From Macrostomum lignano (Eukaryota), in the NCBI GenBank assembly GCA_002269645.1, contig NIVC01000311.1, positions 1-64,000 on the forward strand: a stretch of 64,000 nucleotides of DNA, given 5' to 3'. Position 1 is the first letter of the stretch, and each line of letters opens with the position of its first letter. Positions 193 through 62,645 of the stretch are shown here, one piece after another. The notes beneath the pieces were generated by a model. The model saw only the letters and a list, made by a program, of their open reading frames with translations. It was not told where the DNA came from and did not search any database. The position numbers and the translations under genes were made by a program.

Positions 193-3503
<3,311 letters not shown>

Positions 3504-26426: not shown

Positions 26427-29400
26427 TTAAGTGGCTGAATTTTCACTCTCAGAAGCTTCCGCCTGTCCGGCCGGCCGGAACCGGGCCCGGAACTTGGCCA
26501 GCTGCTGCGGCGACATCAGCAGCCGCATCGCCAGCTGATCGCCGCCACCTTGGCTGGCGGGCACTGCGGACTCGACAGTCACGCCCTGCTGCTCCAGCCA
26601 GGTGTACAGCCGGGAGGCCGGGGAGCAGCGGAGACGCACGCGCTGGTAGCCCAGGCCGGAGATGAGCCGCGACTGCAGCCGCCGCTGCAGCTCGACCAGG
26701 TTCAGCCCCGTCTCGCATGACACCAGCAACGAGTCCTCTGGCGGAGCCGGCGACTCAGAGTCAGTCTGGTGGAAAATGGGATTGCGGGAAAGGGGATCAC
26801 ACTGGGGAGAGGGGATCACACTGGGGAGAGGGGATCACACTGGGGAGAGGGGATCAGACTGGGGAGAGGGGATCACACTGGGGAGAGGGGATCAGACTGG
26901 GGAGAGGGGATCACACTGGGGAGAGGGGATCACACTGGGGAGAGGGGATCACACTGGGGAGAGGGGATCAGACTGGGGAGAGGGGATCACACTGGGGAGA
27001 CGGGATCACACTGGGGAGAGGGGATCACACTGGGGAGAGGGGATCACACTGGGGAGACGGGATCACACTGGGGAGAGGGGATCACACTGGGGAGATGGGA
27101 TCAGACTGGGGAGAGGGGATCACACTGGGGAGATGGGATCACACTGGGGAGAGGGGATCAGACTGGGGAGAGGGGATCACACTGGGGAGAGGGGATCAGA
27201 CTGGGGAGAGGGGATCACACTGGATCACACTGGGAGAGGGGATCAGACTGGGGAGAGGGGATCACACTGGGGAGAGGGGATCACACTGGGGAGAGGGGAT
27301 CACACTGGGGAGAGGGGATCACACTGGGGAGAGGGGATCAGACTGGGGAGAGGGGATCACACTGGGAGACGGGATCACACTGGGGAGAGGGGATCACACT
27401 GGGGAGAGGGGATCAGACTGGGGAGAGGGGATCACACTGGGGAGACGGGATCACACTGGGGAGAGGGGATCACACTGGGGAGAGGGGATCACACTGGGGA
27501 GACGGGATCACACTGGGGAGAGGGGATCACACTGGGGAGATGGGATCAGACTGGGGAGAGGGGATCACACTGGGGAGATGGGATCACTGGGGAGAGGGGA
27601 TCACACTGGGGAGATGGGATCAGACTGTGGAGATGGGATCACTGGGGAGATGGGATCAGACTGGGGAGATGGGATCAGACTGGGGAGATGGGATCAGACT
27701 GGGGAGATGGGATCACACTGGGGAGATGGGATCAGACTGGGGAGATGGGATCAGACTGGGGAGATGGGATCACACTGGGGAGATGGGATCAGACTGGGGA
27801 GATGGGATCAGACTGGGGAGAGGGGATCACACTGGGGAGAGGGGATCACACTGGGGAGATGGGATCAGACTGGGGAGATGGGATCACACTGGGGAGAGGG
27901 GATCAGACTGCGGAGATGGGATCACTGGGGAGATGAGATCACACTGGGGAGATGGGATCAGACTGGGGAGATGGGATCAGACTGGGGAGAGGGGATCACA
28001 CTGGGGAGATGGGATCAGACTGGGGAGATGGGATCACACTGGGGAGATGGGATCAGACTGGGGAGATGGGATCAGACTGGGGAGATGGGATCACACTGGG
28101 GAGATGGGATCAGACTGGGGAGATGGGATCAGACTGGGGAGATGGGATCACACTGGGGAGATGGGATCAGACTGGGGAGATGGGATCACACTCGGGAGAT
28201 GGGATCAGACTGGGGAAAAGGGGATCACACTGGGGAGATGGGATCACTGGGAAGATGGGATCACACTGGGGAGATGGGATCACACTGGGGAGATGGGATC
28301 AGACTGGGGAAAAGGGGATCACACTGGGGAGATGGGATCACTGGGGAGATGGGATCACACTGGGGAGATGGGATCAGACTGGGGAGATGGGATCAGACTG
28401 GGAGATGGGATCAGACTGGGGAGAGGGGATCAGACTGGGGAGATGGGATCAGACTGGGGAAAAGGGGATCACACTGGGGAGATGGGATCACTGGGGAGAT
28501 GGGATCACACTGGGGAGATGAGATCACTGGGGAGACGAGATCAGACTGGGGAGATGGGATCAGACTGGGGAGAGGGGATCAGACTGGGGAGATGGGATCA
28601 GACTGGGGAGATGGGATCAGACTGGGGAGATGGGATCAGACTGGGGAGATAGGATCAGACTGGGGAGAGGGGATCACACTGGGGAGAGGGGATCAGACTG
28701 GGGAGATGGGATCACACTGGGGAGAGGGGATCAGACTGGGGAGAGGGGATCACACTGGGCAGATGAGAGCAGACTGGGAAAAGCCCAGGCTCGCTCACCG
28801 AGTCCAGCAGCAGGTCGCACTTGTTGTAAACCGTCAGCATGCCGTTGCGCAGCTTCTCGGACAGTCCGAGTTTGTCCAGCGTGTCCGAAACTGTCCGGCA
28901 CCGTTCCGGCCAGTCCGGATCGCTGCAGTCGACCACGTGGAGCAGCTGGTCGGCGTCCAGCGAGTCGCGCAGGGTGCAGCGGAACGGAGCCACCAGGCTG
29001 GTGGGCAGGTCGGACAGGAAGCCGATGGTGTCCACCAGCAGGCAGGGGAGGCCGCACGGCAGGCGGCAGCGGTGGTGGCTGCTGTGCAGGGTGGCGAACA
29101 GCCGGTCCTCGGGCAGCAGAGACGACTTGCGGGCCAGCAGCGACACTAAAGAGGTCTTGCCGGCGTTGGTGTAGCCCACCACCGCCACAGTGGGCACCTG
29201 CGAATACAGATGGGTTGGGTTCAAGAATTTTTTCCTTCCCTCACCCTGCATCCCCAACCCTTTCTCTCACCCTGCATCCCCAACCCTTTCCCTCACTCTG
29301 CATCCCCAACCCTTTCTCTCACCCTGCATCCCCAACCCTTTCTCTCACCCTGCATCCCCAACCCTTCCCCGACCCTGCATCCCCAACCCTTTCCCTCACC

Positions 29401-33149: not shown

Positions 33150-34930
33150 CTGACGATTCTGATGGTCAGGGGTCCCGATTCTGATGGTCAGGGAGTCCCG
33201 ATTCTGATGGTCAGGTGTCCCGATTCTGATGGTCAGGGAGTCCCGATTCTGATGGTCAGGTGTCCCGATTCTAATGGTCAGGGTCCTGTTTCTGATGGTC
33301 AGGGGTCCTGTTTCTGATGGTCAGGGGTACCGATTCTGATGGTCAGGGGTCCTGTTTCTGATGGTCAGGGGTCCCGATTTTAATGGTCAGGCTCCTGTTT
33401 CTGATGGTGAGGGGTCCTGTTTCTGATGGTCAGGGGTCCCGATTTTAATGGTCAGGCTCCTGTTTCTGATGGTAAGGGGTCCTGTTTCTGATGGTCAGGG
33501 GTCCCGATTTTAATGGTCAGGCTCCTGTTTCTGATGGTGAGGGGTCCTGTTTCTGATGGTCAGGGGTCCCGATTTTAATGGTCAGGCTCCTGTTTCTGAT
33601 GGTGAGGGGTCCTGTTTCTGATGGTCAGGGGTACCGATTTTAATAGTCAGGGTCCTGTTTCTGATGGTCAGGGGTCCTGTTTCTGATGGTCAGGGGTCCT
33701 GTTTCTGATGGTCAGGGGTCTCGATTTTAATGGTCAGGGGTCCCGATTCTAATGGTCAGGCGCACTTATTCTGATGGTCAGGGGTCACGATTCTGATGGT
33801 CAGGGGTACCGATTCTGATGGTCAGGGGTACCGATTTTAATGGTCAGGGGTCCCGATTCTAATGGTCAGGCGCACTTATTCTGATGGTCAGGGGTACCGA
33901 TTCTGATGGTCAGGCGCACTTATTCTGATGGTCAGGGGTCCCGATTCTGATGGTCAGGCGCACTTATTCTGATGGTCAGAAGTACCGATTATAATAGTCA
34001 GGCGCACTTATTCTGATGGTCAGGGGTACCGATTCTAATGTGCAGGGGTACCGATTCTGATGGTCAGGGGTCCCGATTCTAATGGTCAGGCGCACTTATT
34101 CTGATGGTCAGGGGTCCCGATTCTGATGGTCAGGCGCACTTATTCTGATGGTCAGAAGTACCGATTATAATAGTCAGGCGCACTTATTCTGATGGTCAGG
34201 GGTACCGATTCTAATGTACAGGGGTACCGATTCTGATGGTCAGGGGTCCCGATTCTAATGGTCAGGCGCACTTATTCTGATGGTCAGGGGTCCCGATTCT
34301 GATGGTCAGGCGCACTTATTCTGATGGTCAGAAGTACCGATTATAATAGTCAGGCGCACTTATTCTGATGGTCAGGGGTACCGATTCTAATGTACAGGGG
34401 TACCGATTCTGATGGTCAGGGGTCCCGATTCTAATGGTCAGGCGCACTTATTCTGATGGTCAGGGGTCCCGATTCTGATGGTCAGGCGCACTTATTCTGA
34501 TGGTCAGAAGTACCGATTATAATAGTCAGGCGCACTTATTCTAATGGTCAGGGGTCCCGATTCTGATGGTCAGGGGTCCCGATTCTGATAGTCAGGGGTC
34601 CCGATTCTGATGGTCAGGCGCACTTATTCTGATGGTCAGGGGTACCGATTCTGATGGTCAGGGGTACCGATTCTGATGGTCAGGCGCACTTATTCTGATG
34701 GTCAGGGGTCCCGATTCTGATGGTCAGGGGTACCGATTCTGATGGTCAGGCGCACTTATTCTGATGGTCAGGGGTCCCGATTCTGATGGTCAGGGGTACC
34801 GATTCTGATGGTCAGACGCAATTCTTCTAATGGTCAGGGGTCCCGATTCTAATGTACAGGGGTCCTGTTTCTGATGGTCAGGGGTCCCGATTCTGATGGT
34901 CGGGCGCACTTATTCTGATGGTCAGGGGTC
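33150..34930. repeat. 22-bp minisatellite ATTCTGATGGTCAGGGGTCCCG downstream of the GABPB-like gene
   Basis: About 80 units with GCGCACTT, GTACCG and CTGTTT variants. Confidence 0.96.
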
Positions 34931-35089
34931 CCAGTTCTTGTAATCATCCACAGAGGCACCAAAAACCTGACCAGGAGACCCTAACAAGAACAATTATTAA
35001 CCAAAGCGAGAGTGAATTAAAAAACTTGAGTCAGAGCTCCAGCACTGAGCCAGTACAGGGGCGGGCGGGGGCAGTCCAGTTAGGCCCTG

Positions 35090-38000: not shown

Positions 38001-39414
38001 GTCAGACCAATCTGTGAATATCTGACCAATCAGTGAACATCTGACACAAGCCTGTCAGACCAATCAGTGAATATCTGACACAAGCCTGTCAGACCAATCA
38101 GAGAATATCTGACACAAGCCTGTCAGACCAATCAGTGAATATCTGACACAAGCCTGTCAGACCAATCAGAGAATATCTGACACAAGCCTGTCAGACCAAC
38201 CAGTGAACATCTGACACAAGCCTGTCAGACCAATCAGTGAATATCTGACACAAGCCTGTCAGGCCAATCAGTGAACATCTGACACAAGCCTGTCAGACCA
38301 ATCAGTGAACATCTGACACAATCCTGTCAGACCAATCAGTGAATATCTGACACAAGCCTGTCAGACCAATCAGAGAATATCTGACACAAGCCTGTCAGAC
38401 CAATCAGAGAACATCTGACACAAGCCTGTCAGACCAATCAGAGAATATCTGACACAAGCCTGTCAGACCAACCAGTGAACATCTGACACAATCCTGTCAG
38501 ACCAATCAGTGAACATCTGACACAATCCTGTCAGACCATCCAGAGAACATCTGACACAAGCCTGTCAGACCAATCAGTGAACATCTGACACAAGCCTGTC
38601 AGACCAATCAGTGAACATCTGACACAAGCCTGTCAGACCAATCAGTGAACATCTGACCAATCAGTGAACATCTGACACAAGCCTGTCAGACCAATCTGTG
38701 AATATCTGACACAAGCCTGTCAGTCATTTCCCAATCCACCTACCAGTTGCCCTGGCAGGCGCAGTGCAGCGGCCGGTTGCGCAGGAAGTCCTCGCTGTCC
38801 GGATCCGCCCCGGAGTCCAGCAGCAGCCTGGCAACATCGCCGTGCCCGCCCGCCGCGGCCAGGTGCAGCGGGGTGCGGCCCACTTTATTGCGCGCATCGG
38901 CCTGGAAGCTGTGGGCCAGCAGGCGGCGGCAGATGGCCAGGTGGCCGCTCCGGGCGGCCTGGTGCAAGGCAGTGAAGCCCAGCCAGTCGCTGGAGTGCGG
39001 CACGTTGGACTCCAGCAGGCTGCTCACCTGGGCCAGGTCGCCAGCCTCGGCGTAGGCGTTCAAGCAGCCGCCGAGATTCTTGGCCAGCTCCAGCGGCTTG
39101 TCGTCTTCTTCGTCTGGCTGCTGCTTCACCAGAGGAGTCTGCTGCTCCTGCTCAGCCAATTGCTGCTTCCGCTGTCTGATGCGCCACCTGCAGCCGCTGC
39201 GGCCCTGCATCCGCTGGGAGGCCGCGGCTGCAGAGGCAGCAGCGACAGCTGTGATGGAGGCGGCAGGGTTGAGCAGTGAGGGATCGGCGGCGAGGGACCC
39301 CAGCATTGGACTGCCTGCCTGCTGCTGCTGCTCCTGCGAATATTGCTGCTCCTGCAGAAGCAACTGCTGCTGGAACAATTTCTGTTGCTGCTGCACTGCT
39401 TCTAGTGGCATCAA
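35090..39414 (-). CDS. GABPB1: GA-binding protein beta-like ankyrin repeat protein, 3 exons
   Basis: Exons 39414-38744, 36883-36409 and 35290-35090 are in frame. [66 protein letters not shown] closely follows GABPB (LGKKLLEAARAG..APFTTDWLGTSPLH..DARTKVDRTPLH..SKFCKTAFD). The last exon is less certain. Confidence 0.75.
35365..36403. repeat. 27-bp minisatellite CACTGAGATGAGCACCCAGCCCGGTCA in GABPB intron 2
   Basis: About 37 units, some carrying a 5-bp insertion. Confidence 0.96.
36920..38723. repeat. About 34-bp minisatellite TCTGACACAAGCCTGTCAGACCAATCAGTGAACA in GABPB intron 1
   Basis: About 55 units. Each has the inverted repeat TCTGACA..TGTCAGA and most have a CCAAT core. Confidence 0.96.
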
Positions 39415-42559: not shown

Positions 42560-43325
42560 CTCCGAAATCAGTTTTCTGAGCGAAGGAAGGGCAAGCAGTC
42601 ACATACCCTCAAGTCAAGTAATTATTTTCCTTTTCCAAAACTGGCGATCCCAATGACTCGGCTGTTCTCAACGCTTAAAGCTGATGCTGTTGCTCGCATT
42701 CTTGGTTCTGCCATTGCAACAAGCTGCAGCTCAAACTCAACCGACGCTTCCTCTTGGTCAAGCCCCGCAACTTTACCATCAGTTGTAAAGCGCCTTAAGT
42801 TCTTTTTGTGTTCAGACAGACAAGTAGAAAAATACAAAAGCAAAAGCCAATAACATGTCTAAAACGTTTTCATCTTTTGCAATAACAAACAATCCTGCTC
42901 CCGGTTGGCAAGGCAGTTCGGTTATGCGGAAACGTCATCGATCACCACAAGGATCGAAACTGGGAAACTCGTCGCGACTCATGAGGATGACGGAGCTGGA
43001 CAGCAGCGTCTGCCTGAAGCCTCGCTGAAGCACGGACGGCGGCACCTGCTCAGCGGGGCAGCGGCTTCTCTGCACGGACACCAGACCGCATGCGGAGTCG
43101 TTCGACTCGACCAGAATGCGGACGGCTCTCAGGTCCGTGAAGTTTGCTCGGCCTGAGTCGAAGTCGAAGAAGAAGAGCTGCGGACCGGACGGCTGCAGCA
43201 GAACCGGGACGGGCTGTCCAAGCGACAGTCGGAAATCCGAAACGAGTTGAGCTCTAGAACTAACAGTGACGAGCATAGCCGACTGGGTAGTCACCCACAA
43301 ATACACCTGCTGCTGCTGCTGCTGC

Positions 43326-43328
<3 letters not shown>
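42560..43328. pseudogene. SID-1/SIDT-like copy A, rearranged: 5' piece on + (ATG 42653, frameshifted) and ectodomain/TM piece on - (about 42805-43328)
   Basis: The + strand MTRLFSTLK..LLAFLVLP..AAAQTQPTLPLGQA matches the N-termini of copies B/C and their upstream DNA. The - strand VYLWVTT..PSGPQLFFFDFDSGRANFTDLRAVRIL..RGFRQTLLSSS matches the B/C ectodomain and ends at a (CAG)7 tract. Confidence 0.88.
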
Positions 43329-43394
<66 letters not shown>

Positions 43395-44870
43395 TTGTGT
43401 GTGCGGTGGATTGCGCCCAGGCACCGCTAGAGGCGGTGCTTGGCCAGTTCTACCAGCCCGAGGGGGTCGGCTGCGATGCTGCTGACATCAATGGAGTGTC
43501 CTCCTAGGAAACGGAGCCTGGCACTGGCGAGGGCCGGGCAGTCGAGCCAGTGAACCAGGTCGTCGCATGGGTGACCGCAGCGTAGGCAGAAGGGATCGAC
43601 CGACGGGTCGATGACGCTGTGGTAGGCTCGAAAGAGAAGGCAGTGCCCCGAACGGATGTTGGCGGGGAGCACGGCGTCGGCTGGTTCATTGATGAGGTTC
43701 TCCTCGAGGTGACAGTTGAGATGGCTGTATGTGAGACTCGAGAGGTCGTGTGGCTGATCGGGGGGTCCTGAATGGCGTGGTGAATGACGTTCTTGGCGCT
43801 GCAAAATCTGACTGGGCAGGGAGAGAGGTCCAGCATCGTGGCCTCCTTGGCGAAGCGGTCAGCCATGCAGTTCGTTGCCGGTGACATTTTAGTGGCCGAG
43901 GACCCATTGCCAGGTGATATCGGCGATGGGCGTTGGCAACTGGGCCCTGATGTTGGGGCTGCCGCTGGCAAGCGATCGGAGGAGGGCCTGGCTATCCATG
44001 CAGATATTGGTGGCTCCCGTGGTGGCGGATTTGTTAAGTCAGCTGATGGCGAGGGCTGCGGCTTGGACCTCCTCCTCGAAGGATGTGGTGGAGGAGCGCC
44101 TCGCTGCTGGAGCGTGGCCAGAATGGTCGGGTTGTCCGGGTCGTCGACCGTGACGATGGCCGCGGCACCGCCACCGGCCGTGCCGCCGGCAGCCGAGCCG
44201 TCACAGAAGATGGTGATTGTGCCTGGAAGCAAGCGAATGATGTTGGTGGCAGCTGCCGTGCGCGCTGGGCGAGGCTCCGGCAGATCCATGCTGATGCGCA
44301 CGTCGTTGAAGCTAAAGGAGGCGTCCCACGGGGCGGGGCGCGCAGTGAAAATCGTAGCGCGCGGTGTAGTGTCCGCTTTAATGAGGGGCGTCAGTGCGCG
44401 CGCAAATGCCACCAGCTGCTTCTGCGGAGGCGGTACGGAGTGTTTCCTGTGACCGCGATGTGGCACGGGTGGGAAGCCGGAAGGCGAAGAGCCCTTTCGT
44501 AGGCGACGAGACAAATGGCGTTACTTCCGGTATGGACGGCGGAGCAGATGCCCGCTTCCAGTCTGAGAGCCTCAACAAGAGTCTTGCCGTGTTGGCCGGT
44601 AACAATGCTGAGGGCGGCGTTCTGCGCTCTTTCAAGCTGGTTGAAGGCGGAGTCAGATAGCCAGGGGTGCCAGGCCGGAGCAGCGTAGTTGATGATGCTG
44701 AGTTGCATTGCCTTGTAGATGCGAAGCAAGAGTTTCTTGCTCCACCCCCATTCCTTGGAGGCGAGACAGGCAAGCAGCCGGCAGCGGGAGGTGGACCGTT
44801 GAAAACTTCTGTTCAATGAAAGTTGCATGTGGCTTTCCAACACTGGGACCCAGAAAGAACTCCAGAAGCT
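43329..44870 (-). mobile_element. 5'-truncated, decayed RNase H-containing non-LTR retrotransposon (I/Ingi/Nimb-like group) with a (CA)n tail
   Basis: Post-RT region EWGWSKKLLLRIYKAM..YAAPAW..LERAQNAAL..EALRLEAG. RNase H motifs IFCDGSA, ICMDSQALL, QWVLGH..GNE and ADRFAKEA (with stops and frameshifts). C-terminal CLRCG..HWLDCP zinc knuckle. Stop at 43427, then (CA)n at about 43403-43329. Confidence 0.85.
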
Positions 44871-45399
44871 CCTTGCCTTACAAGTCATGTCCAAAAGTCA
44901 TGTCATGTCATGTCCAAAAGTCAGACAGACTCTTTTATTGTTTATCTCTCTCACTTGCGTATCCTTATATATGTACGTTGCTCGGCCCAAACAGTTGACT
45001 ATCATATCTATCTTGACGCGTCCCTTGGTAACCTAAACAGATTGGCTCACATAACTTGAGTCCATTCACAAAATGCGTAAACCAATTGTGACCTTTCTTT
45101 GTAATTCGTAAAACTACCAAAACTATTAAAATCTGCTTTGTGAAAACTCGGTTTCAGAAACGGACTTTGCTTCGGTTTGGCCCAGTCAGGAACTTCTAGA
45201 TGTAGAATAAAACACAGTGGCAACGATGGCAGCTTCACAAACTCTTCAATAACTTAAAACCTGTGTTATAAAGCTGAAAAACAATTGCCACATCTAAGCC
45301 ATTCTTTGTTTAAACTTGTAAAGTCGGCAAATTTTAACTCTACTTGAAAAAGTTGAGATGTAGAAAACTGATTCTCATCTCATCTCAACATCAAATTAG

Positions 45400-46496: not shown

Positions 46497-49282
46497 TCAG
46501 AAAATCCGGTCTGGCGCGAGCTCCTGTCGCTCTTCATCGAAGTCCATGAAGAGAACGAAGAGCAGCAGGCAGAGCAGCGCCTGCGAGCCGATCAGATGCC
46601 ACAGGTCGTGCTGGTCGAACGGCAGGCCAAGCGGATGCCACAAGCAGTCGTTGTTGGATTCTCGGGACTCAGCCGGGCTGCCTTCCCATTCGGTTGGAGG
46701 GTTGAAGAAAAAGACTACGGCCAGGATGAAAAGGCCAGCAAAAAGCAAGAATAAAATGAGTACAGCAGTTCCTCGACAACAGAGCTTGACAGACTTGACA
46801 CACAGACAGGCTTGAATATCCTTTGGTCTCGTCTTTCTGCAACACTTTCGAATGCAGTAATAAAGGAAGTATAGACTTGCAGATCCGGCAGTCACAGCCA
46901 GAAGGAAATTTGCAAATAGAAAATGTTCATGTAGAAATCCAACTAGAAAACTGGCGATTCCAGCGGCAAAGCAGACAAAAGCAGCTAAGAACGTAAGAAA
47001 ATGCTGCAACAACTGCTTTTTCCGAACGATCAAAGAAATAACAGCCAGCAGCAGCAGCACAACACCCAGCACGCTAAACACGAATTCTCGGCTAACCAAG
47101 GAAAACAGAATGCCCAGCGAGTTCACCAGCACCGTGACGCCCAACGCAACGAAGGTGACGTTGGTGACCGAGCCGGAGCTGAGGTGCCGCTTGCTGTAGA
47201 CAGCCAGGCCCAGCATGCTGGAAAGCATGATCATGAAGGTCGTGTCGAACTGGAAGGTGTTGTGCGACGGACAGATGTGGTAGCAGGCAGAGAGCACGCC
47301 CTCCATGGCCAGCGCCAGACCGGCAGCGTAGTGAGCCGAGTAGCAGCGAGGAATGACGACCGGTTTGGAGATCCGGGGCTCAGGTGGGAGCAGTTGCACA
47401 TTCTCAGTACTCGTATGATGCTCTTCTGATCCTTGAACAGTTGCCTAAAGTAGATAAGATGCAAAAGCATTTGGTAGCTTTAGTCAGCGCTGCCGGAGCG
47501 TAGAAAAAAGTTTATTTAAGGGCAACAACTTTGTTTTGAACTTCACATGTACTTTAGGGTACTTAGGCTAACCAGTGATCTCACCTGTGGCTTGTCATGG
47601 AAAAGTTGTTTCGAAAGGACAACCACCATGAACACTATTCCGGCCGTTACGTAGCCCACATTCGATACCGCATTGTTGAATGCAAAAAATGTCGTCAGCT
47701 CTGTTTTTACATAAAAGCGGCACTTGAAATTATAGTAGCACTCATCCAAGTTTCCGAAGGAGCTGATGGAGTCCTGCTGGAGCAGCACCAGCTGAAAAAC
47801 TGGTAGGCAGTAGAAGATAGCTATGGCCGTCAGCTGCATCACGAGGCTGGCATGATGCATTTTTTGCTCCCTTTCTGGCTCTCCTTGGTTGTCACCATCG
47901 TTAATCTCAGGAGGGTCGTGCTGGTGGATGTGCTCCTGTTCTTGGTTGCCAGCGTCGTTATTCTCATGACGGTCGAGTTGGTCGGTGCCGCAGCACTGGC
48001 AGTACATGCAGTAAACGCTGCAACTGCAATTGCAATCGCATCCGCAGCTTATATCACGAAAACCATGCCAAAAATTTTTTATTGAAGAACACGTTTGATC
48101 AAGGACGTTCTTAAACCCCGATTTACATCTATATCCCCCAACAACACATACAATACCGGTAAATAGCAGAATAAGACCTGAACCAAGCAAGAGAAAAAAA
48201 CAGAGTAGCTTTTTGAAAAACCAAAAAAGCAAAACAACGAAGGAAAGAGCGAAACTTATCACAGAGAAGTACAATACAAAAGCCAATATGCTCAAAGCAG
48301 TTAGTTTGTAGATTTTATCACAAAAAATAAAAGCCACAACTATCGCAGCAAGGCAGTCAACTCCGCCTAAAAGAAAAGTCAAACCAATAAGTGCCCACTC
48401 CTCCGAGTCGTGCATGGCGATCTGCTCAACCTTGATCGTGACGCTCTTGCTGGGAAACCACTGTCGCCGTTCCTGCTCCCAGTTGGCAAGGCAGTTTCGG
48501 TTGTCCGGAAACGCCGTCAGCACCACAAGGAAGCTGGGAAACTCATCGCGCCTCATCAAGATGATGGAGCTGGACAGCAGCGTCTGTCTGAAGCCTCGCT
48601 GGAGCACGGACGGCGGCACCTGATCAGCGGGGCAGCGGCTTCTCTGCACGGACACCAAACCGCATGCGGAGTCGTTCGAATCGACCAGAATGCGGACGGC
48701 TCTCAGGTCCGTGAAGTTTGCTCGGCCTGAGTCGAAATCGAAGAAGAAGAGCTGCGGACCGGACGGCTGCAGCAGAACCTGGACCGGCTGTCCAAGTGAC
48801 AGTCGGAAATTCGAAGCGAGTTGAGCTCTAGCACTCACAGTGACGAGCGCAGCTGACTCGGTAGTCACCCGCAGATACACCTGCTACTGCTGCTGCTGAT
48901 CAGGTGTCTGAGGACTCAGATGCGGTGGGCAGATGGTCCTGGTCACCGACTGGAAGCTCTCTACAGTGCTCTGTTCGCCAGTGCTGCTCACATCAACAAA
49001 GGTGTATGGCAGCGACCAGGTGTGCAGTGTCAGTTGTTGTCTGACAACTACGAGAAGTGACGTATTCGAGTAGCTGGTCGTTTCCAATCGAAGTGCAACA
49101 GTTTCATTTTCAGGCTGAGTATATTTCACAAGAACTTCAAGTGCGCTTTTAGAGCTGATGGTAAAGTTGCGGGCTTGATCAAGCGGAAGTGTCGGTTGAG
49201 TTTGAGCTGCAGCTGGTTGCGATGGCAGAACCAGAAATGCCAGCAACAGCACCAGCTTAAGCGTTGAGAACAGCCGAGTCAT
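46497..49282 (-). pseudogene. SID-1/SIDT/CHUP-1 family transmembrane protein, copy B: 2 exons, otherwise intact, with a premature TAG in the polyQ
   Basis: Exons 49282-47585 and 47444-46497 (phase 0). Signal peptide, RTICP, FYCLPVFQLV, CYYNFKC..AFNNAVSNVGY, MEGVLSACYHICP..FQFDTTFM, WEGSPAESRESN and FDQHDLWH are diagnostic of SIDT. In-frame TAG at 48884-48886. Confidence 0.88.
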
Positions 49283-49331
49283 CGGGATCACCAGTTTCTG
49301 AAAGGGGAAATGATTGCTTGACTTGAGGGTA

Positions 49332-49396: not shown

Positions 49397-49784
49397 TGAC
49401 TTCAGGGTATGAATTGCTTGTCTACACTAGCTCAGAGAACTGATTTCGGAGAAGTTTTTCAGCCTTTTTACAGGACAGTTGTTGAGAACAAACTGATTAA
49501 AATATTCTCCATTTTTCCTGCTATCATTTCAAAGACGCAATTAACTGTCAGTTATTATTAGTTGTTACAACAATTTTATGCCAAAACACTCTCTCTGCTC
49601 CAACACCCCCTTTGCCACAAACAGCTCTTTGCCCAACACTCCCACTGACCCAACACCCCCTCTATCCCAACACCCTCATGAAAGAGCATGTAGATATTTA
49701 GGCGTTGTGAAATTTAGGCGTTGTGAAGTGCGGTGGTTTTAAGCGTTATGAAATTTAGATCTTATGAAAGCTAGAATTAGATCT

Positions 49785-50532
49785 CTGCCCCAGCACCTCC
49801 TCTGCCCCAGCACCTCCTCTGCCCCAGCACCTCCTCTGCCCCAGCACCTCCTCTGCCCCAGCACCTCCTCTGCCCCAGCACCTCCTCTGCCCCAGCACCT
49901 CCTCTGCCCCAGCACCTCCTCTGCCCCAGCACCTCCTCTGCCCCAGCACCTCCTCTGCCCCAGCACCTCCTCTGCCCCAGCACCTCCTCTGCCCCAGCAC
50001 CTCCTCTGCCCCAGCACCTCCTCTACCCCAGCACCTCCTCTGCCCCAGCACCTCCTCTGCCCCAGCACCTCCTCTGCCCCAGCACCTCCTCTACCCCAGC
50101 ACATTCTCTGCCCCAGCACCTCCTCTGCCCCAGCACCTCCTCTGCCCCAGCACCTCCTCTGCCCCAGCACCTCCTCTGCCCCAGCACCTCCTCTACCCCA
50201 GCACCTTCTCTGCCCAGCACCTCCTCTGCCCCAGCACCTCCTCTGCCCCAGCACCTCCTCTGCCCCAGCACCTCCTCTGCCCCAGCACCTTCTCTGCCCC
50301 AGCACCTCCTCTGCCCCAGCACCTCCTCTGCCCCAGCACCTCCTCTGCCCCAGCACCTTCTCTGCCCCAGCACCTTCTCTGCCCCAGCACCTCCTCTGCC
50401 CCAGCACCTCCTCTGCCCCAGCACCTCCTCTGCCCCAGCACCTTCTCTGCCCCAGCACCTCCTCTGCCCCAGCACCTCCTCTGCCCCAGCACCTCCTCTG
50501 CCCCAGCACCTTCTCTGCCCCAGCACCTTCTA
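49785..50532. repeat. 17-bp minisatellite CTCTGCCCCAGCACCTC
   Basis: About 44 near-identical units. Confidence 0.96.
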
Positions 50533-53500
50533 TGCCCCAACGGCCAACATCCGTTTAAGCGATAATGTTTTGTTCAGAATCTTCAATAGAACCTTTTGGG
50601 CTCAGCCACAGAAACGCGCAAGAAAGAGGTCCTCACTCTAAATCAGACAACTTTAATTACTTTTTTCTAGATATCCGCCTACGTGACAAAAACAATATAT
50701 AAACTGTAATACCTCTTAACACAGGTACTAAGATACGCCACAATCCGTCAAATTTAAGCGACACTGCGCAGACAACCACAGAAACAGTAGACTCTACTTT
50801 GCTTGTGACATATCCAGTTACCAGTATTCTAGTTATCTTTGCTCCGAAACGAACTGACAAAGGGTCAACTTAAAAAAATTGAAGTTGTAAGATAGCACAG
50901 ATAGATCTGCAAATCAGTGAAATATTAGGCTAAGCACTGATTGAAATACTTCGTAACTTACGAGTACATAATTCAGAGCTTCCTTAGCGAGTCGAGTTCA
51001 CACTATACAGTGGGATAAATCGAGAAAGGTAGAGTTGAGAATTCAAGTAAATGCGCTTGAAATCTTTAAAATTTTCCTCCTGGATTTTCCTCAACTAGAT
51101 AAACATTCTGAAGACTACTTGTCTGGGAAAACTACTTGTTCATCTTGCTGATTGTTCAACTTTCTCTTCTCTACAAAAACTACAATACTTTCTTATATTA
51201 TAGAATACAGCAAAAAAACATAGCACATACTCGTATTCTAAACACTGCGATGATAAAGGACAGAGCAGAAAAAAGCAACTTTCTTTAAGCACGAGACGGT
51301 AACTCAGTGGCTTGTCGCAGAGGACTGAGTTGCGCGTCGGCCAGAGCGCAGCAACTGCCCTGCTAGTTATAGCCGCTGCGGGAGGCGCTGCCACCAGCAG
51401 AATCGAGCTCAAGGGGTGGGGCGTCTGGGAAGGGGTTCCATTTTTTAGCGTCAGCAGACTTTGCTAACTCAAGGTTTGAGCTTTGGCCGCGGCGAGCAGC
51501 TTGCTTGGCTCACATTGCTTTGCTTGAGACTAATGGGCTTGAATTGTGTTTCGCCAATTTTAAGAGCTGCGTATTTGGCCGCTTGATATGGAATTGACTT
51601 AGGAGCTGGATTGCAACTTAGAGTTAGTCTTTCAAAGAACTCAGAATCACTTTGGGAACGTTGGGAACTAGGGCTTCCGCATTGAGTAGTCTCTGGTGTG
51701 TTGATCGCCGCACTCGACTCCTCGCTTGCCTCGAGCAAGCTTTCAGCTCTCGTCTGAAAAGGTAAGTTGCCACGAAAGCAAGCTTTACTGAGATAACAAG
51801 AGTTGATGAGTTGTGGATTCGAATATAAAAATAATAATTGCACCATGACGCAACCACTTTGGCGACATCGTCCCAGAACAAACGGTAAGGCAATTCTGTC
51901 CATTCCGCTGACTACTGAGCACGCACATGTACATGTGCGCAGACACTGTGCGCAGGCACGCAATAACACACACGCTCATACAAGGTGTACAGCGGTCATG
52001 ACTTTCTAATCGTCAGGTCAAGGACCACTGAAGTCACTTCGTTAAACCTTCTTAAGTAGTCCTTGCGTCAGGTATGTACACCCTCTTTGCACAAGGGGTT
52101 GACCCACAAGCCCAAAAATATGGCCGCGAAAGGAGAGAGATATGAGTGGATCAGGCGATCGGTGACAAACATTAGATCTTACTAGCAATATAGTGCCCCC
52201 TTCTATAAATAAAAAATAAGCAAGGGACTAAAATTATTTATGTGAATCTCTTATGCCTAAGCGATTCCTCCCGTAAGCCTTGACATCTTAGCAATTCCCC
52301 CCGTAAACAAGGAATTCCCTGGTTTACTGGTGCAGGACATCTCAGAAATTCCCCCAGTAAGCCTTGACATCTCAGCAATTCCCCAGTAGACATTTGACGC
52401 GTTTGACGTGACGCAACTTTTATGCTTAATATTTTTAATATAGTCATGTTTTCAGCTAGTGCAATAATCCCTTTTTCATCAAGTGTAATAATCATTTTCT
52501 CATCAAGTGTAATAATCCCTTTCTAAGTTTAGTGAAATAATCCCTTTTACAGTCATTGCATAATCCTTTTCTCAGCTAGTTAGATCTTGTTTGTTATTTT
52601 TAGTCTATAACCCTCTAGTAAAGTCCTACTTTGATCTGGAGTAGGTTAGCGGGCCCGCTTCCACTCCAGCTGGCTTGTTTTAAAAGGCCATTGTTCCGAT
52701 TGCATTTGACTATTCTATTGCTTATGAGTATGACCGATCTAGTTTTACGGCTACACTCACCATAACAATATAATCGAGGGTGGTGGGAAAAGCAAGGGCT
52801 GAGCAGTGGGAAGACTATCGGGGGAGAACTGAAAGGAAACGGAAAGGTTGCTTAACTCCATGAGACCATTGGCTGGATTGGCCAACGATTGGGAGCAGAA
52901 AGTTGAGCAACTGACTTAGGAAATTTTTAGCAAATGAAGCCATTGCCCTGGCTTGGACAGTCTCCAGTGCAGGTGCACCAAAAGCCACCTCTTTCCACAT
53001 TCCACGGACTGACTGGCAATAGGAATAGATCTTACTGGTACAGAGCCAAAACTGGGCAGCTAGAGTCTAGACAGAATTCTAACTGGAAGAGAAGGCTCAC
53101 TTTTTCGTTGGCTAAAAGCGGACACAACCGGGCCGAGTCATTTGGCTTATTTAAACGGCCTGCCTTTCCCCGTCTCAGTCCCATTGACTAAGCGGGTTTT
53201 GAGGTGGGCAGGCTCTTGACAAGGCTTGGGAGTTTTTTGCCATGAACAGGAGACAAACCCTTATGGGGGGGGGGGCGAGGAAATTTGGAGAGCCTGGTAA
53301 ATCAGTGCTGTTTCTGTGTCTGTGATGCATACAGGGTAAAAGCCTAAAGGGCCCCCACTTGAAAGCTGCACCCATGGACATTGGGTGTACCGTTGCTCGC
53401 ATGCTTTTAAGGATGCTTTTTCACCTCAAATGAAAAATGCGCTATAAAAATGCGATATGATACATTAATTATTTATCAGAGAGTATAGGCAGAGAAAAAG

Positions 53501-58083: not shown

Positions 58084-61000
58084 TCAGAAAATCCGGTCTG
58101 GCGCGAGCTCCTGACGCTCTTCGTCGAAGTCCATGAAGAGAACGAAGAGCAGCAGGCAGAGCAGCGCCTGCGAGCCGATCAGATGCCACAGGTCGTGCTG
58201 GTCGAACGGCAGGCCAAACAGATGCCACAAACAGTCGTTGTTGGATTCTCGGGACTCAGCCGGGCTGCCTTCCCATTCGGTTGGAGCTTTGAAGAAATAG
58301 ACTGCGGCCCAGACGGAAAAGCTGACAAAAAGCAGGAAAAAAAAGACCACAGCAGTTCCTCGGCAGCGGAGCTTTCCAAGTGGCATATTTTCCCTGGGTC
58401 TCGTCTTTCTGCAACACTTTCGAATGCAGTAATAAAGGAAGTATAGACTTGCAGATCCGGCAGTCACAGCCAGAAGGAAATTTGCAAATAGAAAATGTTC
58501 ATGTAGAAATCCAACTAGAAAACTGGCGATTCCAGCGGCAAAACAGACAAAAGCAGCTAAGAACGTAAGAAAATGCTGCAACAACTGCTTTTTCCGAACG
58601 ATCAAAGCAATAACAGCCAGCAGCAGCAGCACACCACCCAGCAGGCCAAACACGAATTTTCGGTTAATCAAGGAAAACAGAATGCCCAGCGAGTTCACCA
58701 GCACCGTGACGCCCAACGCAACGAAGGTGACGTTGGCGACCGAGCCGGAGCTGAGGTGCCGCTTGCTGTAGACAGCCAGGCCCAGCATGCTGGAAAGCAT
58801 GATCATGAAGGTCGTGTCGAACTGGAAGGTGTTGTGCGACGGGCAGATGTGGTAGCAGGCGGAGAGCACGCCCTCCATGGCCAGCGCCAGACCGGCGGCG
58901 TAGTGAGCCGAGTAGCAGCGAGGAATGACGACCGGTCTGGAGCCCTCGGGTGATGTGTGACAAGTGGCGGATTCTCAGTCGTAGTCTCTAGTGGTTCTTG
59001 ATCAGTTGGCAGCGCCGGACCGGCAGCGTAGTGAGCCGAGTAGCTGCGAGGAATGGAGATCTTTGGCTCTTGAACAGCTGCCTAAAGTAGATAAGATGCA
59101 AAAGCATTTGGTAGTTTTAGTCATTTTTAGCTTTAGTTAGTTTTAGGAGGGTAGAAAAAAGTAAACTTAAGGGCAACAACTTTGTTTTAAAGTTCACATG
59201 TATTTAGGGTAACTAGGCTAACCAGAGATCTCACCTGTGTCTGGTCATGGAAAAGTTGCTTCCAAAGGACAACTACCATGAACACTATTCCGGCCGTTAC
59301 GTAGCCCGCATTCGAAACCGCATTGTTGAATGCAAAAAATGTCGTCAGCTCTGTTTTTACATTAAAGCGGCACTTGAAATTATAGTAGCACTCATCCAAG
59401 TTTCCGACGGAGCTGATGGAGTCCTGCTGGAGCAGCACCAGCTGAAAAACTGGCAGACAGTAGAAGATGGCTAGGGCCGTCAGCTGCATCACGAGGCTGG
59501 CATGATGCATTTTTTGCTGCCTTTCTGGCTGTTCTTGGTTGCCAGCATCGTTAATCTCAGGAGGATCGGGCTGGTCGTTGCCAGCATTGATATTCACAGG
59601 AGGATCGGGCTGGTCGTTGCCAGCATTGATATTCACAGGAGGATCGGGCTGGTCGTTACCAGCATTGATATTCATAGGAGGATCGGGCTGGTCGTTGCCA
59701 GCATTGATATTCACAGGAAGATCGGGCTGGTCGTTGCCAGCATTGATATTCACAGGAGGATCGGGCTGGTCGTTGCCAGCATTGATATTCACAGGAGGAT
59801 CGGGCTGGTCGTTACCAGCATTGATATTCATAGGAGGATCGGGCTGGTCGTTGCCAGCATTGATATTCACAGGAAGATCGGGCTGGTCGTTGCCAGCATT
59901 GATATTCACAGGAAGATCGGGCTGGTCGTTGCCAGAATTGATATTCACAGGAAGATCGGGCTGGTCGTTGCCAGCATTGATATTCACAGGAGGATCGGAC
60001 TGGTCGTTGCCAGAATTGATATTCACAGGAGGATCGGGCTGGTCGTTGCCAGCATTGATATTCACAGGAGGATCGGGCTGGTCGTTGCCAGCATTGATAT
60101 TCACAGGAGGATCGGGCTGGTCGTTGCCAGCATTGATATTCACAGGAGGATCGGGCTGGTCGTTTCCAGCATTGATATTCACAGGAGGATCGGGCTGGTC
60201 GTTGCCAGCATTGATATTCACAGGAGGATCGGGCTGGTCGTTGCCAGCATTGATATTCACAGGAGGATCGGGCTGGTCGTTGCCAGCATTGATATTCACA
60301 GGAGGATCGGACTGGTCGTTGCCAGCATTGATATTCACAGGAGGATCGGGCTGGTCGTTGCCAGCATTGATATTCACAGGAGGATCGGGCTGGTCGTTGC
60401 CAGCATTGATATTCACAGGAGGATCGGGCTGGTCGTTGCCAGCATTGATATTCACAGGAGGATCGGGCTGGTCGTTGCCAGCATTGATATTCACAGGAGG
60501 ATCGGGCTGGTCGTTGCCAGCATTGATATTCACAGGAGGATCGGGCTGGTCGTTGCCAGCATTGATATTCACAGGAGGATCGGGCTGGTCGTTTCCAGCA
60601 TTGATATTCACAGGAGGATCGGGCTGGTCGTTGCCAGCATTGATATTCACAGGAGGATCGGGCTGGTCGTTGCCAGCATTGATATTCACAGGAGGATCGG
60701 GCTGGTCGTTGCCAGCATTGATATTCACAGGAGGATCGGACTGGTCGTTGCCAGCATTGATATTCACAGGAGGATCGGGCTGGTCGTTGCCAGCATTGAT
60801 ATTCACAGGAGGATCGGGCTGGTCGTTGCCAGCATCGTTAATCTCAGGAGGATCGGGCTGGTCGTTGCCAGCATTGATATTCACAGGAGGATCGGGCTGG
60901 TCGTTGCCAGCATTGATATTCACAGGAGGATCGGACTGGTCGTTGCCAGCATTGATATTCACAGGAGGATCGGGCTGGTCGTTGCCAGCATTGATATTCA

Positions 61001-62212
61001 TAGGAGGATCGGGCTGGTCGTTGCCAGCATTGATATTCACAGGAGGATCGGACTGGTCGTTGCCAGCATTGATATTCACAGGAGGATCGGGCTGGTCGTT
61101 GCCAGCATTGATATTCACAGGAAGATCGGGCTGGTCGTTGCCAGCATTGATATTCACAGGAGGATCGGGCTGGTCGTTGCCAGCATTGATATTCACAGGA
61201 GGATCGGGCTGGTCGTTGCCAGCATTGATATTCACAGGAGGATCGGACTGGTCGTTGCCAGCATTGATATTCACAGGAGGATCGGGCTGGTCGTTGCCAG
61301 CATTGATATTCACAGGAGGATCGGGCTGGTCGTTGCCGCAGCACTGGAATTGCATGCAGTACAAGCTGAAACTGCAATTGCAATCGCATCCGCAGCCACA
61401 AGCAATAACATGACGAAAGTCTTCTTCATCTTTAATTTGATCAAACACTGTTAACGAATTCCCACACAGGTATCCAATAACAGCAACTACAAGCAGGATA
61501 AGACCTAAAACAAGCAAGATAACAAAACAGAGTAGCTTTTTGAAAAACCAAAGAAGCAGAACAACGAAGGAAAGAGCGAAACTTATCACAGAGAAGTAGA
61601 AAGATACAAAAGCCAATATGCTCAAAATAGTAAGTTTGCAGCTTTGATCATAAAAAATAAAAGCCACAAGTATCGCCACAGCGCAGTCTATAACGCCTAA
61701 AAGAAAAGTCAAACCAACAAGTGCCCACTCTGCCGAGTCGGGCATGGCGATCTGCTCAACCTTGATCGTGACGCTCTTGCTGGGAAACCACTGTCGCCGT
61801 TCCTGCTCCCAGTTGGCAAGGCAGTTTCGGTTGTCCGGAAACGCCGTCAGCACCACAAGGAAGCTGGAATTAAACTCGTCACGCCTCATCAAGATGACGG
61901 AGCTGGACAGCAGCGTCTGTCTGAAGCCTCGCTGGAGCACGGACGGCGGCACCTGATCAGCGGGGCAGCGGCTTCTCTGCACGGACACCAAACCGCATGC
62001 GGAGTCGTTCGACTCGACCAGAATGCGGACGGCTCTCAGTTCCGTGAAGTTTGCTCGGCCTGAGTCGAAGTCGAAGAAGAAGAGCTGCGGACCGGACGGC
62101 TGCAGCAGAACCTGGACCGGCTCTCCAAGCGACAGTCGAAAATTCGAAGCGAGTTGAGCTCTAGCACTCACAGTGACGAGCGCAGCTGACTCGGTAGTCA
62201 CCCGCAGATACA

Positions 62213-62261
<49 letters not shown>

Positions 62262-62645
62262 ATCAGGTGTCTGAGTACTCAAATGCGGTGGGCAGATGGT
62301 CCTGGTCACCGACTGGAAGCTCTCTACAGCGCTCTGTTCGCCAGTGCTGCTCACATCAACAAAGGTGTAAGGCAACAACCAGGTGTGCAGTGTCAGTTGC
62401 TGCCTGACAACTACAAGAAGTGACGCATTCGAGTAGCTGGTCGTCTCCAATCGAAGAGCTACAGTTTCATTTCCAGGCTGAGTATATTTCACAAGAACTT
62501 CGAGTGCACGTTTAGAGCTGATGGTAAAGTTGCGGGCTTGACCAAGCGGAAGTGTCGGTTGAGTTTGAGCTGCAGCTGGTTGCGATGGCAGAACCAGGAA
62601 TGCCAGCAACAGCACCAGCCTAAGCGTTGAGAACAGCCGAGTCAT
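58084..62645 (-). CDS. SID-1/SIDT/CHUP-1 family transmembrane protein, copy C: 2 exons, giant repeat loop, one apparent 1-bp frameshift in exon 2
   Basis: Exons 62645-59235 (1137 codons, no stop) and 59081-58084. Same SIDT signatures as copy B, including SACYHICP and DQHDLWH. Adding one C at the 58948-58950 run restores the frame (about 1469 aa). Confidence 0.87.
59538..61337 (-). repeat. Coding 39-bp minisatellite (13-aa AGNDQPDPPVNIN), about 46 units
   Basis: In frame within exon 1 of copy C. The flanks align to copy B, which has only about one related unit. Confidence 0.96.
62214..62261 (-). repeat. (CAG)16 polyQ tract in the copy C ectodomain
   Basis: 48-nt pure CTG run on the + strand. 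Confidence 0.95.

Follow-up and report, generated by a model that had tools for sequence, protein, structure and literature searches.

Exon 3 of human DRD4 carries a 48-bp variable number tandem repeat (VNTR) that is in frame, encodes a Pro-rich segment of a cytoplasmic loop, differs in copy number and contains variant units arising from unequal exchange. A second kind of element lying within coding sequence is the exitron, a protein-coding internal exonic intron. In the SID-1/SIDT family of membrane proteins the first cytosolic loop (CL1), between transmembrane segments (TM) 1 and 2, exceeds 100 amino acids in human SIDT1, is disordered and was left unresolved in cryo-electron microscopy (PMC11208740), in agreement with the disordered state that an initial annotation of the DNA described here had given for this loop in SID-1/SIDT proteins. 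For the loop of SIDT2, an Arg-rich nucleic-acid-binding motif is described by Hase 2020, as cited in PMC11208740. Here we report on a 39-bp tandem array found in the corresponding loop of a SID-1-like gene, copy C, of Macrostomum lignano, located in a 64,000-nucleotide stretch of genomic DNA (contig NIVC01000311.1, positions 1 to 64,000; hereafter the window). The array is probably a young, length-unstable and nearly neutral coding VNTR, carried by a recently disabled or truncated SID-1-like paralog.

Tandem Repeats Finder (TRF) delimits the array at window positions 59538-61337, with 46.2 copies, 97% matches, 0% indels and a score of 3404. This span takes in 6 bp of the next, diverged unit, and translation of the minus strand from 61337 down to 59544 gives 46 complete, stop-free units of 13 amino acids, (GNDQPDPPVNINA)x46, or 598 residues (59544..61337, minus strand). 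The initial annotation had announced a perfect repeat of about 600 residues in about 46 copies; the number of in-frame units stands, but the repeat is not perfect, only 25 of the 46 units being identical to the consensus at the nucleotide level and 29 at the protein level. The units are arranged head-to-tail, their length falls within the 10-100 bp range and is a multiple of three, and the 1152-codon open reading frame (ORF) that contains them (59187-62645, minus strand) is continuous with the flanking coding sequence, as is characteristic of coding minisatellites. The flanks align, as had been pointed out for these in-frame units, to an array-free paralog in the same window, copy B (46497..49291, minus strand). 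The open frame says little by itself, because the unit is also devoid of stops in two plus-strand frames (ORFs 59502-61454 and 59539-61413). As computed for the 598 residues, the repeat has a net charge of about -92 and a pI of about 4.05 and contains neither K nor R; if translated, the array would add a strongly acidic, disordered polypeptide of about 61 kDa.

The exon 1 ORF of copy C matches the Pfam family PF13965 (SID-1_RNA_chan) with an E-value of 5e-35 and 121.6 bits, and the C-terminal ORF of the same gene (58084-58878) with an E-value of 1e-40 and 140.2 bits, the gathering cut-off being 28.7 bits; the spliced protein retrieves human SIDT1 with an E-value of 2e-63 (phmmer against PDB). 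SIDT1 residues 64-295 are the counterpart of the extracytosolic domain (ECD), and the helix that follows the array is matched to the stretch from residue 447 onward, which corresponds to TM2. Because the ECD and TM1 precede the array and the TM2 helix directly follows it, the alignment places the array in CL1 of a SID-1/SIDT-family gene, the position to which it had initially been assigned. Exon 1 (59235..62645, minus strand; 1137 codons, ending at the donor CAG/GTGAGA, where the slash marks the splice junction) encodes, in this order, a signal peptide, an ECD with a polyglutamine (polyQ) tract, three hydrophobic segments, a Cys-rich motif, the array and TM2-TM3. The family layout of ECD, TM1, loop and TM2 onward is found in copy C, two of the hydrophobic segments being extra and atypical. 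The three segments upstream of the loop (61470..61733, minus strand; amino acids 305-330, 337-367 and 369-392) are a trait of the Macrostomum subfamily, canonical SIDT proteins having only TM1 at this place. Both the two extra segments and the CGCGCDCNC...CC motif before CL1 are absent from the canonical SIDT homologues aligned. The motif itself, CGCGCDCNCSFSLYCMQFQCC (61338..61400, minus strand), lies directly N-terminal of the array and could be a palmitoylation or metal-binding site, and the extra segments could form an added TM hairpin. As an odd number of hydrophobic segments precedes the loop, a cytosolic placement of CL1 is still consistent with this arrangement. An AlphaFold2 model of the paralogous protein P0001 (Mlig005546g1), built on an alignment of 13 sequences, predicts the hydrophobic segments as helical with low confidence and the array as coil (predicted local distance difference test score, pLDDT, around 30); with a mean pLDDT of 54.9 and a predicted template modelling score of 0.48, the model does not allow the topology of the extra segments to be decided.

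Beyond the array, the reading frame of copy C is broken. The single intron (GTGAGA...CTACTTTAG; 59082..59234, minus strand) has the donor and acceptor used in copy B, P0001 and a third M. lignano protein, P0003; exon 1 meets the intron between 59235 and 59234, and with the canonical acceptor CTACTTTAG/G exon 2 begins at 59081. The first 137 nt of exon 2 (58945..59081, minus strand) are occupied by a lesion, in which the IPRxYSAHYAAGxAL segment is partially duplicated and the length deviates by 1 nt from that of copy B, and splicing at the canonical TAG/G acceptor, with 16 pyrimidines in 20, leads into 92 out-of-frame codons and a stop at 58803-58805. The conserved C-terminal half of the SID-1 domain (58084..58944, minus strand; 286 codons and a stop, with the motifs SACYHICP, FQFDTTF and FDQHDLWH) is open, but it is in frame only through the weak acceptor CCCGAG/G at 58944, with 13 pyrimidines in 20, or through GT-AG pairs with poor donors. 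An enumeration of all acceptors and internal GT-AG pairs able to restore the frame of copy C yielded no strong site, just this GAG/G acceptor and two internal GT-AG pairs with poor donors. Via the canonical acceptor, the zinc-site/hydrolase motifs expected of a family member (S..YH.CP, FQFD and HD.WH) are out of frame with exon 1.

The same lesion, with 0 mismatches over 290 bp, is borne by the counterpart locus in the reference assembly Mlig_3_7 (L001, on NIVC01000319.1), and the NCBI model of the corresponding protein, P0002 (Mlig025017g1), which has the copy C loop with 11 units, ends in exactly the same 92-residue out-of-frame tail. A frame lesion is thus common to two assemblies, the window and L001/P0002, as would be expected of a pseudogene. 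The gene models of Mlig_3_7 are based on a StringTie/RNA-seq genome-guided transcriptome (Wudarski et al. 2017). The identical segment, window 58945-59234 against L001 12023-12312, comprises the intron and the lesion-bearing start of exon 2 (100% over 290 bp), whereas the adjacent exons differ by 1.4-1.9%. This identity suggests recent gene conversion, and the lesion looks young, because the segment that contains it is the same at both loci while its flanking exons have diverged. The broken exon 2 junction was absent from the initial annotation, as were the stop codon that interrupts the frame of copy B, the reference array of 11 units and a second, homologous array in a paralog, which are described below.

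Simple and tandem repeats account for 15% of the M. lignano genome (PMC5730564), and the 64-kb window gives 66 TRF rows, with periods from 2 to 102; about one third of the periods between 11 and 102 are multiples of three. Since copy C is frame-disrupted in two assemblies and this genome generates minisatellites everywhere, a near-neutral VNTR is the most likely explanation for the array; damage to other members of the gene cluster, namely a TAG in copy B, the reduction of copy A to a fragment and frameshifts in P0003 and in a further reference copy, copy X, was also counted in favor of a disabled paralog. Nevertheless, copy C may yield a full-length protein, for example through the acceptor at 58944, in which case the acidic, Pro/Asn-rich repeat of about 600 residues would be a selected disordered cytosolic spacer or scaffold that alters trafficking, partner binding or nucleic-acid handling by CL1. 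We regard this as rather unlikely, even though several observations speak for it and weigh against a disabled gene. The C-terminal ORF is open and retains all the conserved motifs, the weak acceptor at 58944 may serve a minor isoform, and the seemingly intact P0001 has a homologous 12-unit array in the same loop, indicating that the loop tolerates arrays in a possibly functional protein. Likewise, the ratio of nonsynonymous to synonymous substitution rates (dN/dS), which is 0.6-0.8 between copy C and the other paralogs, is low between copy C and L001: 0.37 in the ECD (11 synonymous and 13 nonsynonymous changes), 0.09 in the post-array region (3 and 1) and 0.23 in the C-terminal half read in its conserved frame (7 and 5). 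The sum of 21 synonymous and 19 nonsynonymous changes compares with an expectation of about 24% synonymous, although these values rest on few substitutions and may be affected by gene conversion. They suggest either constraint until recently or the import, by gene conversion, of selected variants from functional paralogs. In addition, arrays are confined to this Macrostomum subfamily among the 160 family members sampled, the human SIDT1 loop is long and disordered, and the cytosolic domain of SIDT2 is described in PMC11208740 as binding RNA.

Against a full-length product, the strong canonical acceptor leads to the frameshift, while the frame-restoring site is a disfavored GAG with a modest pyrimidine tract, and the RNA-seq-based model of the counterpart P0002 is truncated. 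Moreover, the homologous loci differ in having 11 and 46 units, the variants within the array display no synonymous excess, and a charge of -92 would be expected to repel RNA, in contrast to the Arg-rich motif ascribed to SIDT2 by Hase 2020, as cited in PMC11208740. The multivalent scaffold put forward in the initial annotation finds no support, its carrier gene being frame-disrupted downstream of the array in the window and in the reference assembly.

The internal structure of the array documents how it grew. Besides the consensus, the 46 units include C12T (P to S) in seven units, C19T (P to L) in six, G24A (V to M) in three and G36T (A to S) in two, and synonymous changes in codon 1, GGC to GGA and GGC to GGT, in two units each. 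These four nonsynonymous and two synonymous types match the expectation in the absence of selection and give no signal of selection. An EIND-type unit with four substitutions occupies positions 13 and 46, a spacing of 33 units or 1287 bp, confirming what had been reported for the end of the array. The block duplication deduced from this spacing holds only in part: the internal EIND unit does mark a duplication that included the array terminus, but a single duplication of a 33-unit block is too simple, since units 1-13 differ from units 34-46. Clearer than the 33-unit block are higher-order repeats of 11 units, seen in the S-type units 16 and 27 and in the GGA units 20 and 31, and of four units, units 43-45 repeating units 39-41. 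The array grew, therefore, as groups of 4, 11 and about 33 units were duplicated. This variant pattern fits slippage combined with the unequal exchange of blocks of several units.

In the counterpart locus, which is 96-97% identical to the window, the array spans L001 11285-11719 and has 11.2 copies of a 39-bp unit. The variants C12T, C19T, G24A, G36T and GGT occur in both arrays, and the order of the 3' terminal units (M, GGT, consensus, EIND) is identical. Judging from these shared variants and shared terminal order, the two arrays are homologous, with a roughly four-fold difference in length; with a flank identity of 96-97%, the loci having 46 and 11.2 units may be homeologs, haplotypes or strains. 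The shorter array in an independent assembly raises the alternative that a genuine array owes its length of 46 units (1.8 kb) to misassembly, its actual length being closer to the 11 units of Mlig_3_7. This appears very unlikely: the 46 units show non-periodic, structured variants, including the internal EIND unit, that collapse or looping during assembly would not produce, long reads readily cover 1.8 kb, and the flanks differ from L001 by 3-4%, so that the two loci may be homeologs or haplotypes of truly different length.

A second array is present in the P0001 gene, on the same reference contig as L001 (NIVC01000319.1; L002 12099-12567), with 12 copies of PENNDAVADHAER and 98% homogeneity. 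It occupies the same position in CL1, just after the Cys-rich CC-G motif, and has the same period of 39 bp and 13 amino acids; its gene model is full length and in frame and appears intact. Compared in a single register, the P0001 unit agrees with the copy C consensus at 29 of 39 nucleotides and with the EIND unit at 31 of 39, the maximum after shuffling being 25. From this closer match we take the EIND unit as the ancestral type, and the P0001 and copy C arrays as descendants of one loop module. In copy B, copy X (in L002) and P0003 the loop is in a single-copy state, for example CCGIDQLDPPIKTDAGNQEQPER; the array-free loop of copy B, GTDQLDRHENNDAGNQEQEHIHQHDPPEINDGDNQGEPEREQK, together with the alignment of its flanks, bears out the proposed derivation of the array from a non-repetitive loop of this type. 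Of the 160 proteins of the SID-1 family that were retrieved, P0001 and P0002 alone contain a tandem array. A search of 5.8 billion proteins returned only three close relatives, all from M. lignano, the next-best family members being at most 36% identical, and no Logan or transcript-derived close homologues were returned. When the repeat alone was used as query, no protein matched and the repeat-bearing P0002 was missed too, which makes that search uninformative, probably as a result of composition filtering. A literature search on the three M. lignano gene identifiers returned no papers; in the articles found on RNA interference (RNAi) in M. lignano and on small-RNA pathways of flatworms, SID-1 is mentioned in general terms only.

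The array had also been interpreted as a possible exitron, in which the donor-like CCT/GTGAAT and the acceptor-like GACCAG/ of each unit would allow variable numbers of units to be removed in frame. Indeed, GT and AG dinucleotides fall at codon boundaries in every unit and any excision measures 27+39k nt, hence preserving the frame; such preservation is, however, automatic for a 39-bp period. By inspection and by what is generally known of splice sites, the donor lacks a G at -1 and at +5, and the acceptor lacks a polypyrimidine tract, with about 40% pyrimidines upstream, whereas the real intron of the locus uses CAG/GTGAGA and TTTAG/. These in-unit sites are weak by metazoan consensus and do not amount to a functional donor and acceptor within the coding exon, and the RNA-seq-based models of P0002 and P0001, the counterpart and the paralog, keep 11 and 12 units, respectively. 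Consequently, the exitron is not supported and we deem it highly improbable, removal of the array in a minor isoform being possible.

Returning to a near-neutral VNTR as the preferred explanation, we hypothesize that replication slippage and unequal exchange amplified 39 bp of CL1-coding sequence in a SID-1/SIDT-like paralog specific to Macrostomum, single units being multiplied first and blocks of 4, 11 and about 33 units later, until 46 copies were reached. The frame would have been kept only because the unit measures 3 x 13 nt and is stop-free in that frame. The frame-disrupting rearrangement in exon 2 would then lead to a truncated product consisting of the ECD, TM1 and two further hydrophobic segments, the acidic repeat, TM2-3 and 92 junk residues, devoid of the conserved zinc-site half. 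Accounted for in this manner, the array would not be a selected scaffold but a nearly neutral consequence of the genome's proneness to minisatellites, carried by a recently disabled gene in a tandem cluster with fast turnover; its neutrality and the mutational mechanism are what we infer from the features described.

The remaining members of the cluster show various states of decay. In copy B a CAG of the polyQ tract is replaced by an in-frame TAG (48884-48886, minus strand). As copy B is open elsewhere and its intron is removed in frame, the change resembles either a nonsense mutation of very recent date or an erroneous base. An alternative genetic code as an explanation for this TAG was rejected, as the gene ends in TGA and the other paralogs have CAG at that place; we know of no deviation from the standard code in M. 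lignano. In copy C the polyQ tract of the ECD (CAG x16; 62214..62261, minus strand) is a second length-unstable coding repeat, with 16 residues as against 8 in the L001 counterpart, 6 in P0001 and P0003, and QQQQ followed by the stop and Q in copy B. Copy A (42893..43328, minus strand) is an ECD-only fragment of the SID-1-like family beside retroelement-like ORFs, which adjoin it in the region 42893-44894 (minus strand) and have no Pfam match; window positions 43525-44161 are 99.8% identical to L002 16461-17098. Copy X of L002 has a frameshift in exon 1 and P0003 a frameshifted C-terminus, lesions that come from a PacBio assembly and may be indel errors. The 3' half of copy C and the sequence downstream match copy X of the reference contig at 96.5% (L002 2492-5231 among the compared regions), and those of copy B match the P0003 locus (L003), on a different reference contig, at 98%, whereas the 5' halves of the cluster copies are only 88-93% identical. 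This mosaic implies that paralogs or homeologs have exchanged sequence by unequal crossing-over or gene conversion. An ankyrin-repeat ORF (Ank_2, E-value 4e-19) lies at 38740-39414 (minus strand), and in L003 a gene with ankyrin repeats is likewise predicted downstream of P0003. The density of minisatellites in the window is extreme, with many kilobase-scale arrays of unrelated units, several of which give long spurious ORFs in multiple frames; other arrays are found at 225-3179 (11 bp x 280), 26793-28778 (19 bp x 106), 33154-34932 (22 bp x 81) and 49783-50539 (17 bp x 45).

The occurrence of arrays in both P0001 and copy C leads to a further idea, namely that CL1 of this Macrostomum-specific SID-1-like subfamily is a hotspot in which an acidic 13-residue module undergoes recurrent amplification that expressed proteins, such as the apparently intact P0001, tolerate or that selection even favors, giving length-polymorphic, highly acidic cytosolic tethers. 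We find this quite doubtful. Such tethers may tune the activity or sorting of a membrane protein that handles double-stranded RNA (dsRNA) or lipids, in a worm into which dsRNA can be introduced by soaking. On this view, copy C would represent a long functional allele that relies on the non-canonical acceptor, or else a truncated ECD-repeat decoy. If true, copy C would be the first member of the SID-1 family with a repeat-expanded CL1, and the loci would offer a natural length series for testing the role of the disordered loop. Irrespective of this, the SID-1-like cluster of M. lignano is fast-evolving and partly decayed, and its gene models, the number of its paralogs and the lengths of its proteins vary with the assembly used (11 or 46 units, 8 or 16 Q, frame lesions), which is relevant to the cataloguing of the dsRNA-uptake machinery in this RNAi model. 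The locus also provides a clean example of the birth of a minisatellite from a 13-residue loop segment, followed by block-wise growth.

Compared with the systems mentioned at the outset, the copy C array resembles the repeat of DRD4, both being in-frame minisatellites with a period that is a multiple of three and both lying in a cytoplasmic loop of a multi-pass membrane protein. Nevertheless, DRD4 has 2-11 copies and encodes an intact, expressed receptor, whereas copy C has 46 copies and a broken frame downstream. With exitrons the array shares its location inside a coding exon and a length divisible by three, but not their splicing, the in-unit signals being weak and the arrays being retained in the transcript-based models of P0002 and P0001. 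The position is homologous to CL1 of human SIDT1 and SIDT2, between TM1 and TM2; however, the human loop is non-repetitive, while the array of copy C is strongly acidic, lacks K and R, and is preceded by the two additional hydrophobic segments and the Cys-rich motif. Likewise, its charge is opposite to that of the SIDT2 loop, which is Arg-rich and nucleic-acid-binding in the account cited above. A coding VNTR is therefore a known kind of feature, and its instance in the SID-1 family appears to be new.

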